Positions 43,392-48,947 of a stretch of 64,000 nucleotides of DNA are shown in pieces. The DNA is from Octopus sinensis (taxonomy: Eukaryota): the NCBI RefSeq assembly GCF_006345805.1, contig NC_042999.1:153636001-153700000 (forward strand), read 5' to 3'. A program made the position numbers and the translations under genes. The notes below the pieces were generated by a model that was not told the origin of the DNA, did no database searches, and saw only the letters and a program-made list of their open reading frames with translations. Positions within the stretch are counted from its first letter, which is position 1. Every line of letters begins with the position of its first letter.

Positions 43392-44240
43392 TGGCGGCGA
43401 GCTGGCAGAAACATTAGCACGCCGGGCGAAATGCGTAGCCGTATTTCATCTGCCGTTACGTTCTGGGTAGTAAAGAAATAGGTCTTTCGTCTGCCGCTAC
43501 TACGTTCTGAGTTCAAATTCCACCGAGGTCGACTTTGCCTTTTATCCTTTCGGGGTCGATTAAATAAGTACCAGTTACACACTGGGGTCGATATAATCGA
43601 CTTAATCCGTCTGTCTGCCCTTGTTTGTCCTCTCTGTATGTAGCCCCTTGAGAGCAGTAAAGAAATAGGTATTTCATCTGCCGCTACGTTCTGTGTTCAA
43701 ATTCCGCCGAGGTCAACTTTGCCTTTCATCTTTTCGGGGTCGATTAAGTAAGTACCAGTTACGCACTGGGGTCGATATAATCAACTTAATCCCTTTGTCT
43801 CCTTGTTTGTCCTCTTTGTGTTTAGCCACTTGTGGGTAGTAAAGGAATAGGTATTTCGTCTGCCGCTACGTTCTGAGTTCAAATTCCGTCGAGGTCGACT
43901 TTGCCTTTTATCCTTTCGGGGTCGAGAAATTAAGTACCAGTTTCGCACTGGGGTCGGTGTAATCGACTTAACCCGTTTGTCTATCCTTGTTTGTCCTCTC
44001 TATGTTTAGCTCCTTGTGGGTAGTAAAGAAATAAGAAACGTTAGCACGCCGGGCAAAAAAAATACTTAGCGGGATTTCATCTGTCTTTACGTTCCGAGTT
44101 CAAATTCCGCCAAGGTCGACAAGGCCTTTCATCCTTTCTGGGTCGATAAATTAAGTACCAGTTGCATACTGAGGTCGATCTAATCGACTGGAATCCTCCC
44201 CTAAAATTTCAGGCATTGTGCCTAGAGTAGAAAAGAATAT
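43392..44240 (+). mobile_element. SINE family 2 concatemer: head, three ~185-bp tail-A units, terminal tail-B unit
   Basis: Repeating core gaggtc(g/a)actttgccttt(c/t)atc...; junctions aaagaaata-ggt-atttc and aaagaaata-agaaacgttag. Confidence 0.9.
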
Positions 44241-44944
44241 TTAATTAATATCAGTTCAGGTGAGGATGGCTTTGTACAGTTTTGAAGAAAGTGGAAGTCG
44301 ATTAAAAAGAACCCAGTGTTCCACTGGTACATTTTTTATCGAGCTCAAACGGAAAAGCTGACATCAGCGAGACTGGAACTCTGAACATTAACGGAAAGAA
44401 ATGTCGGAAAGCATTTTCTGCAATGTTCTAACGATTCTGTCAAAGAAATTCTTTGTACCAATTAAAACCAAATCAAAAATTGTTCTGCGTTTATTGAATT
44501 TTCTGTTGTTGTCTGAGATTGTGATAAATCGCCACACCACAGCGTTTATTTAATATGACCAAACATTACACTCACTCCTCACCCCGCTGCATTCTGCATT
44601 TAATTAATTTTAATCAGTTTAAATTCAGTGGGTGTCTTGACTGTCTTTTCAAAGCAGAATTAATTAATTTTTCTCATCATTAAGGGTGCGTCATTAGAGT
44701 TGATTAAAATATCTTGGAGCACGCAATCAAGTACGTGAGCATTCACATTCCTGTTAAATCATTCCAATTCTTTCTAATTTTTGCACAAGGCCAGCCATTT
44801 TGAGGGAAGTGGGAGTCGATTAGATCGACTCCAATGTTCAACTAATGCGTATTTTATCGACCTTGGGAGGATAAAAGGCAAAGTCAACCTCGGCGAAATT
44901 TGAACTCGAGACATAAAACCAGAATAAGTACCCCTAAACATATA

Positions 44945-45435
44945 TAGGCGCAGGAGTGGCTGTGTGGTAATTACCTTGCTTACCAACCACATGATTCCGG
45001 GTTCAGTACCACTGCGTGGCATCTTGGGCAAGTGTCTTCTACTATAGCCTCGGGCCGACCAAAGCCTTGTGAGTGGATTTGGTAGGCGGAAACTGAGAGG
45101 TCCGTCGTATATATGTATATATATATATATATATATATATATATATATATAATATATATATATATATGTGTGTGTGTGTGTTGTGTGTGTGTGTGTGTGT
45201 GTGTGTGTGTGTGTGTGTGTTGTGTGTTTGTGTGTCAGAGTTTGTCCCCCCAGCATTGCTTGACAACCGATGCTGGTGTGTTTACGTCTCTGTAACTTAG
45301 CGGTTCTGCATAAGGGACCGATAAAATAAGTACTAGGCTTACAAAGAATAAGTCCTGGGGTCGATTTGCTCGACTGAAGGTGGTGCTCCAGAATGGCCGC
45401 AGTCAAATGACTGAAACAAGTAAAAGGGTAAAAGA
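44945..45435 (+). mobile_element. SINE family 1, full length
   Basis: Head, microsatellite, body and tail. Confidence 0.9.
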
Positions 45436-46477
45436 GTGTCCTCGGTGCCTTTTCTTTCCTATTAATTGCTCATGCAGAAGGCGCTTGTGAGTATTTTTTT
45501 AAACCTTGAAGATGCATATCCTAAATTTGCAAGCTACCAGTTTATACTGCGACCTTCAGTAACGGCACTTGACGTTCCGATTTCAAACGCCCCGGGGCCA
45601 GTTTTCCCACTCAACCTTCCGTTGTCACAAGAATAATGTTTCAGTAAATAAGTAGAATTATTGATTGGACCGTTGTCCCTATAAGGAAGTATTGCCTTGC
45701 GGTATTTCTTGCAGTTCTTTCCGTTCTAAGTTCAAACTCTGCCTCGGTCAACTTTGCCTTTCATCTTTTCAGGGACGCCAAAAGTATCGGCTGGTATCAA
45801 CTAAATCCCCACCCCCACAAAACTGCTAACCCTGTATCTATAGTAGCAAGGATCGTCATTACTACTACTACTACTACTACTACTACTACTACTACTACTA
45901 CTACCACTACCACTACTACTATTGCTGCTGCTGCTGTTGTTGCTAAGCAACAAGACGGGTAAGGGTGATTAGGTGATGGTCTAGGGTTTCGGGTCGGGAG
46001 ACCCCAGACATTGGAAAAATAAACTTTGGTCGTCTTGTTGCAGTCGAGGGCTCTTCGTTGACACCTGACACCACTGGGAGGTGGCCCTCGAAGTCGCTGG
46101 AAATGGAGATCTCCAGGTCCAAATTCTTGAACGGCTGCTGCTGCTGCTATCAGGATGCATGGCCTAATGGTTAGGGTGTTACACTCACGATCGCGGGATC
46201 GTGGTTTCAGTCCCTGGAGTGGTGCATTGCGTTCTTGAGCAATACCCTTCATCTCAGTTTTTTCTGCGATCATTTCGAGACCTGACTAAAAGTAGAGAAT
46301 TTTAGTATTTATCAAGTATTGAGATAAACGTCTACACATTCCTAAAAATCTTTGATACCTTTTGTTGTGTCCATTGTGAAACAGAATGATGCTAGTGGTG
46401 GTGGTGGTGGTGGTGGTGGTGGTGGTGGTGGTGGAGAAACAAGCGTAAAGACACATACACACATCTATCTATATATC

Positions 46478-46850
46478 TGGGTGAATGTAGCAAAGATGGC
46501 ACGTATGAATGACGAAGCCACCTTGACCATAATCCTAAGAACCCAGAAAAATTTAAAACAGAGAGTTACTTACTTCCAAATAAATGTGTTAACATGTGAC
46601 ATTATTGATCGAGGTTACCGTGGTCTTTTGCGTAAGCTTTTCTTTCCACGGATAAACATTATCTGTTTCCCCCTTTACACTTTACATCATGACATTTCTG
46701 TGATACACGATCCCTATTGATCATTTTTTTTACGATCCCTTTTGATCGAAAACCTACCCTCGCCCCTTTATTTCTCCCCAAAAAGACAAGCTCTACTTTG
46801 TAATTTGTCCCCTCTGTGTTCAGCCCCATGTGGCTAATAAAGAAACATAT
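46478..46850 (+). mobile_element. 5'-truncated Tx1-like copy with TATC repeats on both sides
   Basis: WVNVAKMARMNDEATLTIIL vs WVNVAKMVRASNETILSMIL at ~535-595; same 3' UTR. Confidence 0.88.
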
Positions 46851-47507
46851 CTATCTGTTTATCTATCTATCTAGATATGATGGTTGGACTGGTAAGGATG
46901 TTCTGATCCTATGACCGTTCACATAGGATCAGATGTTGGACTCTCCCGTCGAGGATGACCTCTCAGTGTTCAGCTTTTACCTAACGACCTGCACAAATAA
47001 TTGTTTCTAGTGATCAAATGTACGTGCTGTACATCAGCTCTACCTGTCTATCTATCTATCTATCTATCTATCTATCTATCTATCTATCTATCTATCTATC
47101 TATCTATCTATCTATCTATCTATCTATCTATCTATCTATCTATCTATCTATCTATCTATCTATCTATCTATCTATCTATCTATATATCTATCTATATATA
47201 TATATATATTATATATATATGTGTGTGTGTTATATATATATAATATATATATATATATATATATATATAGAGAGAGAGAGAGAGAGAGAAGGAGTGAGAG
47301 AGTGATAGATAGATAGATAGATAGATGGATAAATAGATAGATAGATAGATAGATAGATAGATAGATAGATAGATAGATAGATAGATAGATAGATAGATAG
47401 ATAGATAGATAGATAGATATACATATGCACATGAAGGGTTTCCACACAGTTTCCGTATACCAATTCACTGACAAGGCATTAGGTCAATTGCTGGCATTGG
47501 GTTATAG

Positions 47508-47708
47508 CAGTGCTTTTCAAACTTTTTGCTGGAGCGGAACCCCAAGGAAACATTCCACTGGCTCGAGGAACCCCTGTGCAATAATTTAATAGTCTTATGC
47601 ACACGTATCTGCACAGGAGAATTAAAAATTACTGCCGATCTTAGCAGTTTTGTAACTTCTTGCGGAACCCCTAGACTGTACTGGCAGAACCCTGGTTGAA
47701 AACCACTG
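47508..47708. mobile_element. hAT (Charlie-like) MITE
   Basis: TIRs cagtgcttttcaa / ttgaaaaccactg; 8-bp TSD ggttatag at 47500-47507 and 47709-47716. Confidence 0.9.
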
Positions 47709-48004
47709 GGTTATAGTATAAGACAAGTGCTCAACGTGCCGTGCAGCAGATCAGAACTCAAAACCATGTGCTTTGGATGCAAACCATCCAATCGAACAGT
47801 CATGATCTTAATCATAGTCATGCTTGAGAATAATTTTTATAAAATGAAAAACATTTCATTCAATAATCTTTTCAGAAATCCAGTTCTCTTAAGCTTTTCA
47901 ATTTGGGATACGCTTTAGCGGCCACGATTTCCTTTGACTGTATCCCAGTAAGACATAAAAGTGGGCGTTCTAATGAGTTTATATTGAGAGTTAGCCTACT
48001 GGAA

Positions 48005-48947
48005 ATACATTTCTTTATTGCCCACAGGGGTCTAAACATAGAGGGGACAAACAAAGAGATTAAGTCGATTACATCGACCTAGTGCGTAACTGGTACTTTA
48101 TTTATCGACCCCGAAATGCTGAAAGGCAAATTCAACCTCGGCGGAATTTGAACTCAGAACGTAGCGGCAGACGAAATACCTATTTCCTATTTCTTTACTA
48201 CCACAAGAGACTAAACACAGGCAAACAAGGAGAGACAAACGGAATAAGTCGATTACATCGACTTCAGTGTGTAACTGGTACTTAATTTATCGACTCCGAA
48301 AGGATGAAAGGCAAAGTCGAGCTCGGCAGAATTTGAACTCAGAACGAAATACCTATTTCTTTACTAACCACAAGGGGCTAAACACAGAGAGGACAAACAA
48401 GGACAGACAAACGGATTAAGTCGATTATATCGACTCCAGTGCGTAACTGGTACTTATTTAATCGACCCCGAAAGGATGAAAGGCAAAGTCGACCTCGGCG
48501 GAATTTGAACACAGAACGTAACGGCAGACGAAATACCTATTTCTTTACTGCTCACAAGGGGCTACACACAGCGAGGACAAATAAGGACAGACAAACGGAT
48601 TAAGTTGATTATATCAACCCCAGTGCGTAACTGGTACTTATTTTATCGACCCCGAAAGGATGAAAGGCAAAGTCGACCTCGGCGGAATTTGAACACAGAA
48701 CGTAACGGCAGATGAAATACCTATTTCTTTACTGCTCACAAGGGGCTACACACAGAGAGGACAAATAAGGACAGACAAACGGATTAAGTCGATTATATCA
48801 ACCCCAGTGCGTAACTGGTACTTATTTTATCGACATCGAAAGGATGAAAGGCAAAGTCGAGTCGGCGGAATTTGAACTCAGAACGTAGCGGCAGGTGAAA
48901 TACCCACTAAGCATTTCGCCCTGCGCGCTAACGTTTCTGCCAGCTCA
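48005..48947 (-). mobile_element. SINE family 2 pentamer, all tail-A units
   Basis: Five cores at ~185-bp period, one head at ~48945. Confidence 0.9.

Follow-up and report, generated by a model that had tools for sequence, protein, structure and literature searches.

Head-to-tail chains of a SINE with a tRNA-like head in Octopus sinensis restart at two fixed head positions and possibly grow by homology-guided self-insertion

The window analysed here is a 64-kb stretch of the Octopus sinensis genome (NC_042999.1, our contig C3:153636001-153700000, from a 2.72-Gb assembly of 13,516 contigs), and it contains four head-to-tail arrays of a short interspersed element (SINE) that we call family 2. 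From 27 full copies we built a 231-nt consensus of family 2 with the tail named A, which consists of a head (1-~95, GGCGGCGAGCTGGCAGAAACG...GAGTTCAAATTCC), a core, and tail A itself (168-231), ending in GGGTAGTAAAGAAATA. A sister type, B1, has the head and the core to ~130 in common with the tail-A type and ends in ...CCTTGTGCCTAGAGTAGAAAAGAATA. A previous sequence-only reading of the window had described the arrays as sharing a single grammar, with one complete head, inner units that end in tail A and restarts at either of two points inside the head, and had explained them by self-targeted (homing) insertion. All four arrays were located as claimed and follow this grammar (30205-30632, 35061-35445, 43393-44239 and 48009-48946), except that array 4 has no complete head, being 5'-truncated at position 7, and that the first unit of array 3 lacks 74-216. 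Tail B had also been called unrelated to tail A, which proved incorrect: its last 13 nt (GTAGAAAAGAATA) are similar to the tail A end (GTAGTAAAGAAATA).

Array 1, on the reverse strand, joins a complete head-core-tail A copy (consensus 1-231; 30400-30629; 91.8% identity to the consensus by blastn) to a second unit at 30205-30399 that restarts at position 15 (AGATACGTTAG), covers consensus 15-175 and carries a B-like tail (..CCAGTAGAAAGGAAC); the two units have T28, GTCTT61-63 and C74 in common. Array 2, on the forward strand, consists of a complete tail-A copy with the head haplotype G43/C48 (35061-35289) and a unit restarting at 48 (GGTATTTCG; 35290-35445), which comprises consensus 48-166 and tail B1. 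Array 3, also forward, lies between the target-site duplications TTTAATCAATATCA (43378-43391) and TTTAATTAATATCA (44240-44253), which match at 13 of 14 positions. It begins with a complete head 1-73 of the C48 haplotype joined to the last 15 nt of tail A (43393-43480, the tail part being 43466-43480), a piece left either by the internal loss of 74-216 or by an insert truncated to 15 nt, and continues with three 48-231 units, each with a tail-A end (43481-43667, 43668-43849 and 43850-44033), and a terminal unit (44034-44239) that restarts at 15 (AGAAACGTTAG) and carries tail B1; its junction recurs among the genome-wide matches given below (C3:153680023). Array 4 comprises five reverse-strand units (48009-48946), namely 7-231 at 48722-48946, 48-231 at 48538-48721 and again at 48354-48537, 64-231 at 48188-48349 with GAAATAG duplicated at the junction, and 48-230 at 48009-48180; the last unit has tail A, followed by an GTATTTCC stub, and no tail B is present. 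Its units 1 and 2 have rare variants in common, and identity over three units is 94%. Tandem Repeats Finder gave periods of 182-184 for the arrays. Stubs of 7-9 nt of the next unit (GGTATTTT, GGTATTTAG, GTATTTCC) between a final tail A and unrelated DNA were seen at the window 48009-48013 flank and at the array ends of loci L002 and L046; they would come either from priming within the next-unit part of a longer template or from loss of a terminal unit.

To place these arrays in a wider context, we used a 329-kb sequence sample made up of the window, 20 arbitrarily placed 10-kb stretches and 21 junction-centred loci, the last picked by an exact 26-mer, which biases some comparisons, together with genome-wide counts of 26-mers with at most one mismatch, which are lower bounds; reversed-pattern controls gave 0 matches throughout. 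Among the 32 arrays of the sample, 63 later units started at 48/50, 6 at 15/16 and 2 elsewhere, so that 69 of 71 restarts fell at the two points named by the sequence-only reading, marked by the motifs GGTATTTCG (consensus 48) and AGAAACG (15). Genome-wide, the junction from tail A to 48 was found 38,421 times and that to 15 2,250 times, compared with 2 matches for tail A followed by a complete head (position 1), 26 for position 217 (the look-alike GGTAGT inside the tail) and 2 for position 132 (AGTACC); junction positions are thus not random. Tail B1 was joined to 48 in only 2 exact and 4 near cases, compared with 13,356 B1 tails genome-wide, which bears out the claim that tail B is essentially never internal. 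Once divergence is allowed for, junctions number on the order of 100,000. Within the 264 kb not selected for junctions, 32 tail-A ends were followed by a 48-restart in ~18 cases, by a 15-restart in 4 and by flanking DNA in ~10, and none of the 13 units starting at 48 in arbitrarily placed sequence adjoined unique DNA. Arrays held from 2 to 10 units, at least 10 in the largest, with roughly geometric sizes (9, 4, 3, 2 and 1 for n=1-5), and periodic runs of junction matches showed an exact spacing of 184 bp. The last unit had been said usually to carry tail B; some arrays do end that way, but 14 of 32 end in tail A, and downstream partners were heterogeneous (tail A, B1 and older families). Tail A was intact at both junction types. 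We considered microhomology joining at the junctions and rejected it, as the whole of tail A is retained at both and simple overlap joining does not fit; an assembly artefact is unlikely, since dispersed arrays occur on all large contigs and every one has flanks and duplications of its own. These observations show that a chain consists of a complete copy, n copies without 1-47 (rarely without 1-14) and often one other-tailed copy in last place.

We then compared units within and between arrays. In arrays of 2-5 units, within-array identity was 0.87-0.93 versus 0.89 to units elsewhere, neighbours had 2.2 derived sites in common versus 1.6 for random pairs (of ~14 per unit), and 21 of 29 neighbour pairs had no rare variant in common; the subfamilies of neighbours agreed in 15 of 27 cases versus an expected 0.49, by a by-eye tally from the haplotype table. 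Because neighbours are about as different as random copies and subfamilies are mixed, short arrays in general are not recent DNA tandem duplications, a result in favour of the sequence-only reading, which had set its proposal against simple unequal crossing-over. Long arrays behaved differently: in J014 (10 units) and J022 (at least 8), identity was 0.94 within the array versus 0.885 to other arrays, neighbour pairs had 7.6 derived sites in common versus 1.6 for random pairs, and haplotypes were array-specific and partly alternating. Locally similar pairs also occurred within short arrays (array 4 units 1-2, U041 units 2-4, U050 and J005). Long arrays and some short-array pairs were therefore amplified locally, whereas the junctions themselves arose repeatedly and separately, each from independent copies, at or around the time of retrotransposition. 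The first unit tended to be the youngest, with a weak trend (divergence 0.041-0.059 vs 0.053-0.077; permutation P 0.02-0.06). Two further age comparisons yielded no usable signal. A seemingly greater age of terminal B1 units, which would mark them as the resident target, was dropped as evidence when the difference of 10.8% vs 6.7% fell to 8.5% vs 6.5% (p=0.17) in the region where the A and B1 consensuses are identical, and array heads showed no excess of age over the first unit's body relative to monomer heads, a comparison of little power.

Whole arrays lie between a single target-site duplication of 8-19 bp at unrelated non-SINE targets (12 A-ended and 8 B1-ended elements or arrays). Among A-ended duplications at such targets, 5 of 16 start with GGT (binomial 5e-7), namely GGTAATAG, GGTATTAT, GGTAATAA, GGTTGTAC and G|GTATGA, and one non-SINE-target duplication starts with AGAAATAG; both kinds of start match the sequence behind tail A in arrays. 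The targets of B1-ended arrays are AATA^T(T/A) sites, consistent with pairing of 4 nt to the ..GAAUA end. DNA-level insertion into resident copies does occur at both restart points. At L009, a full unit lies at ^GGTATTTCG of an older A|B1 dimer, with a 16-21-nt duplication of 48-~68, and the dimer retains its own outer duplication TCATTGAAATGTAA; at L030, an older SINE carries a trimer [1-231][48-231][48-231] at its ^AGAAAAT (position 15), with its own 15-~31 (~17 nt) duplicated on each side of the insert. Genome-wide, the split-head pattern GGTATTTCG-N(6-24)-GGCGGCGAGCTGGCAG was found 186 times, typically as 13-26 nt of head, (A)AA and a new complete head, compared with 50 for the same design with the 9-mer at position 15 and 35 with a control 9-mer at 76. 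After removal of tandem copies, these numbers became ~150 : 22 : 15 for positions 48, 15 and 76, so position 48 is a real hot spot of classical insertion, only ~10-fold enriched. DNA-level insertion at the points named earlier is directly visible in L009, L030 and the split heads, but such classical products are ~1% as common as the clean junctions.

The two restart points have features in common. The head is predicted to fold into a 13-bp hairpin (31-43/48-60) with the loop UAGC, and its closing pair 43/48 covaries among copies as U.G (GCTTAGCGG), G-C (GCGTAGCCG) or U-A (GCTTAGCAG), examples in the window being 35103/35108 and 56972/56977; this argues that the hairpin is a real RNA structure. 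Both junctions are preceded by C. Position 48, which comes directly after the hairpin loop, is also the only site that distinguishes first from later units: all 46 restart units had G48, and another base stood there in 10 of 28 first units and in 7 of 9 monomers. In 9-10 of 28 arrays, a complete head with C48 (linked to G43) or A48 precedes a G48 unit. These features suit an RNA-level cause and, equally, a rule that the last base of a primer pairs with the template. A stop of the m1G37 type at G48 was discarded, as the cDNA would end at 49, yet G48 is faithful in 46/46. A short nicking motif was rejected as the cause of 48, because GGTAGT in the tail matches the duplication starts equally well, is at least as abundant and has more upstream homology than GGTATT in the head, yet is used ~1,500 times less; with 26 versus 38,421 junctions, and with ordinary insertions in varied non-SINE targets, the partner does not behave as a strictly sequence-specific element of the Tx1 type, the context that the sequence-only reading had given. 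Nor did the suggested resolution by simple homology hold, in which an old head would be followed by a duplicated 48-6x: first and second units differ at 11 of 90 sites in 48-62 (12%), as random pairs do, so this segment is not a copy, C48 or A48 heads precede G48 units, and heads are no more diverged than those of monomers.

In its anatomy, the element is probably an ordinary tRNA-type SINE, with a LINE-derived tail (LINE, long interspersed element). Complete heads of the GCTTAGCGG type number 43,367 genome-wide by pattern count, and the head consensus contains B-box-like GAGTTCAAATTCC and A-box-like TGGCAGAA motifs; ARAGORN reported 0 tRNAs across the whole 64-kb window, and an Rfam search of one monomer region (window 56900-57200) gave no tRNA match at E<=10. 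We take TGCTTAGC in the head to resemble the anticodon arm of tRNA-Ala(AGC), in which case position 48 would presumably correspond to tRNA position 37 and position 15 to a D-loop base. Tail-A units are ~6.5% diverged from the consensus and fall into two main subfamilies, with TA or AT at positions 125/128. In the window, family 2 also occurs on the forward strand as a monomeric tail-A copy (1-231; 56930-57160; end ..GTAGTAAAGAAATA) with the duplication ATATATATGTATG inside a (TATG)n tract, and as a monomeric tail-B1 copy with a complete head and an internal 32-nt deletion (61348-61534). Core deletions of 32-54 nt between two GGGGTCGAT direct repeats recur in tail-A and tail-B1 copies alike (L008 1516-1691, L012 1516-1694, L019 1512-1648 and window 61348-61534); large first-unit deletions were accordingly rejected as truncated inserts, since these two repeats bound them and monomers carry them too. 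Two copies of an older family-2 relative (window 49280-49356 and 49449-49656, reverse strand), ~80% identical to the consensus and with the tail ..AGTAGAAAGGATT, have long (ATT)n tracts on either side, which suggests that this older subfamily ends in or targets ATT repeats. We also observed tandem arrays of head fragments only, with periods of ~40, 65-66, 76 and 104 bp and identical successive junctions (fragment, AA, new head), at C1:195358953-195359246, C7:15322782-15323080, C4:103048075-103048271, C28:20086632-20086994, C6:11406710-11407276 and C27:18498499-18499168; these are a second kind of SINE-derived tandem repeat, which evidently multiplied locally.

Tail A over 188-229 is 88-90% identical to the 3' end of another element (common stretch ~42-45 nt), the presumed partner LINE, whose 3' end (..TTTGTCCCCTCTGTGTTCAGCCCCATGTGGCTAATAAAGAAACATA, then (TCTA)n) lies at 46804-46850 on the forward strand, with a second forward copy at 28356-28402. 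In L047, this 3' end sits behind a reverse-transcriptase open reading frame (7596-9927; RVT_1 3.8e-12), the best solved relative of which is human LINE-1 ORF2p (E=1e-6), ahead of R2 (3e-5), and L1-Tx1 families have been reported to be recently active in Octopus vulgaris (PMC13282606). The microsatellite (TCTA)n follows the partner 3' end at 46851 and in L047, and window 26950-28402 holds at least five 5'-truncated partner 3' ends (~36-130 nt) in one orientation, alternating with (ATCT)n/(TATA)n and including an (ATCT)96 tract at 27214-27599; the partner LINE may target or generate this ATCT-type microsatellite. Three degraded LINE fragments also lie in the window (16935-19772, reverse; 22116-23866 and 51042-53641, forward), which retain one endonuclease domain (19098-19772) and three reverse-transcriptase domains (16935-17951, 23102-23866 and 52634-53185), and none of the fragments was tied to tail A.

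The model that covers most of these facts is homology-guided self-insertion, in which chains grow as tail-A copies are reverse-transcribed into resident SINEs, and we give it a probability of roughly 40%. A run of four T is the stop signal of RNA polymerase III, and the consensus has no TTTT run; with no such run in the unit, the polymerase would read through into the next unit, and because most genomic tail-A units precede GGTATTTCG..., many templates would carry ...AAAUA-GGUAUUUCG... behind the tail. This 3' extension could then pair with the antisense strand of a nicked resident SINE from 48 (from 15 for RNAs with the rarer junction), the nicked DNA end would prime copying of tail A and the upstream unit, and the far end would be closed through homology with the resident head. 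This is the homing with homology-based resolution of the sequence-only reading in altered form: RNA-DNA homology would replace a sequence-specific endonuclease in targeting, the junction position would be inherited from the template rather than set by the nick, and the process would feed itself. A junction copied from the template would explain the exclusivity of 48 and 15, the absence of tail B upstream together with the varied residents downstream, and the lack of 48-truncated copies in unique DNA; short pairing with the next-unit stretch would explain duplications that start with GGTAWT or AGAAAT at ordinary sites, and classical closure of the far side would explain the split heads. The fuller claim, that a non-autonomous retroelement homes into its own copies by an RNA guide through an autocatalytic, endonuclease-independent targeting, every insertion restoring the junction and adding to the templates that carry a guide, we regard as doubtful.

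Several points weigh against homology-guided self-insertion. The guide RNA is purely inferred, and the combination of one duplication, a truncated downstream copy and an upstream copy that is complete and exact at its 3' end is the classic signature of template-switch chimeras. At both restart points the tRNA-like head is predicted to form a single-stranded loop, a location that an RNA-level mechanism explains directly and that this model makes a historical accident. The units of one array are about the same age (chi-square 49 on 31 df, 66 when shuffled; P=0.06), the gradient towards younger 5' units is weak, and the outer duplications are equally young (5/102 mismatches for B1-ended and 5/167 for A-ended arrays, p=0.5), so one-step insertion fits equally well; the age data cannot separate it from homology-guided insertion. 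A stretch of 14-24 nt common to neighbours at the start of the unit had looked strong as a duplication footprint (8 vs 0.8 expected) and was rejected: similarity between neighbours at 49-72 spans the whole unit in arbitrary loci and is selection-biased in junction-picked loci, and first and second units do not have the footprint in common. The 329-kb sample is also small. The chains were made during retrotransposition rather than by ordinary DNA duplication, with self-targeted insertion as a candidate route.

The main rival, which we consider somewhat unlikely, is that arrays are one-step concatemers generated by template switching at two RNA loops. Target-primed reverse transcription would start on any family-2 RNA, and at 48 or 15, one in the anticodon-like loop and the other in the D loop, the enzyme would jump to the exact 3' end of a tail-A RNA, perhaps on meeting a cleavage site, a modified base or a hairpin top, repeating such jumps until one RNA is copied to its 5' end and the whole cDNA integrates once. 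This would account for the single duplication round an array, the complete and independent first unit, the cut of downstream units at the switch point, the mixed subfamilies and similar ages of units, and the L030 trimer, inserted as one block with its own duplication; it also suits the placement of both points after a C in predicted loops, the 13-bp hairpin with its covarying 43/48 pair, the requirement for G48 in 46/46 restart units with heads lacking G read through, and the roughly geometric array sizes. Yet B1 RNAs would have to start about one-third of arrays and almost never accept a jump (2-6 vs 38,421 junctions, with 13,356 tails), end-to-end jumps from the true 5' end are absent (2 matches), no 48-truncated copy is joined to unique DNA, the match between ordinary duplication starts and restart motifs would be a coincidence, and the 5'-to-3' age gradient is not predicted. 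The interpretation offered by the sequence-only reading is partly supported, with one-step template switching remaining a rival to it.

The other two explanations place the multiplication of units elsewhere. Multimeric masters, in which one or a few founder dimers are transcribed and retrotransposed as arrays and unit number is altered by slippage of the reverse transcriptase, a process thought to act between repeats in other elements with internal variable repeats, strike us as unlikely. They would give an invariant junction sequence, a single duplication per whole array, units without a T4 terminator, periodic runs with exact 184-bp spacing, and the rare variants common to some neighbours (U041 units 2-4, U050, array 4 units 1-2 and J005), but neighbours are nearly random draws of subfamilies, most have no rare variant in common, no site other than position 48 is diagnostic of unit position, and downstream partners come from several families, which means that junctions were formed many times or that units were heavily shuffled. 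As a general origin, tandem duplication or unequal crossing-over of a founder dimer at the DNA level, giving a SINE-derived minisatellite, is very unlikely and is already refuted, although it is clearly at work in long arrays: the within-array similarity and array-specific alternating haplotypes of J014 and J022, the 94% identity over three units in array 4 and the identical junctions of head-fragment tandem arrays elsewhere all speak for it, whereas most arrays are short, with units of mixed subfamilies that are no more similar than expected, and ~100,000 dispersed junctions with separate duplications are beyond local events alone.

If self-targeted, homology-guided reverse transcription is correct, a SINE chooses to land in copies of itself and has built ~100,000 junctions, with chains making up perhaps 1-2% of a 2.7-Gb genome, and retroelements would have a new route to tandem DNA, with self-insertion also acting as damage limitation. 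If template switching is correct instead, tens of thousands of junctions in the octopus genome are a natural record of the points at which a LINE reverse transcriptase exits its template. Either reading is directly testable through comparison of octopus genomes, and repeat annotation miscounts SINE copies and their ages unless arrays are modelled. A survey of octopus repeats described a SINE/LINE burst at ~6.5% divergence (PMC13282606), in agreement with the age of ~6.5% for tail-A units here, and arrays go unmentioned in recent octopus repeat surveys (PMC13282606).

In the literature searched, we found no SINE that combines mostly chained copies, a variable unit number and cuts at two exact loop positions. 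Like tRNA-derived SINEs with LINE tails, including those of cephalopods, family 2 has a head with RNA polymerase III box-like motifs, a conserved body, a LINE-matching tail and variable duplications of 10-19 bp, but about two-thirds of its tail-A ends are followed by another unit rather than by flanking DNA, and its head is taken for a tRNA neither by ARAGORN nor, over one monomer, by the Rfam families. Site-specific LINEs of the Tx1/R1/R2 type carry downstream target sequence on their RNA, which determines where reverse transcription begins; both they and family 2 insert at an exact nucleotide, and our preferred model uses the same principle of homology between RNA 3' end and target, whereas ordinary insertions of family 2 are unspecific, the target is the element's own head, and nested insertions are only ~10-fold enriched. 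Mouse L1 promoter monomers, SVA repeats and SINE-derived satellites are known internal or tandem repeat arrays and likewise contain variable numbers of ~200-bp units, with long arrays locally homogenised, but units of short family-2 arrays are as diverged as unrelated copies and belong to mixed subfamilies. Dimeric and trimeric SINE families are known, such as Alu and the colugo CYN monomers, dimers and trimers (cited in PMC4758252), in which head-to-tail units (of tRNA type in CYN) move as one element; these have a fixed number of diagnostic monomers, whereas chains here hold from 2 to at least 10 units, which are interchangeable, and 47 or 14 nt are lost at each restart. Chimeric retrocopies made by template switching, of the U6-L1 type or the tripartite chimeras of Magnaporthe (PMC2104539), resemble the chains in that the upstream partner reaches its exact 3' end, the downstream partner is 5'-truncated and one duplication surrounds both, but their truncation points are scattered and their RNAs different, whereas in family 2 two fixed points account for ~40,000 junctions and a single SINE serves as donor as well as acceptor.

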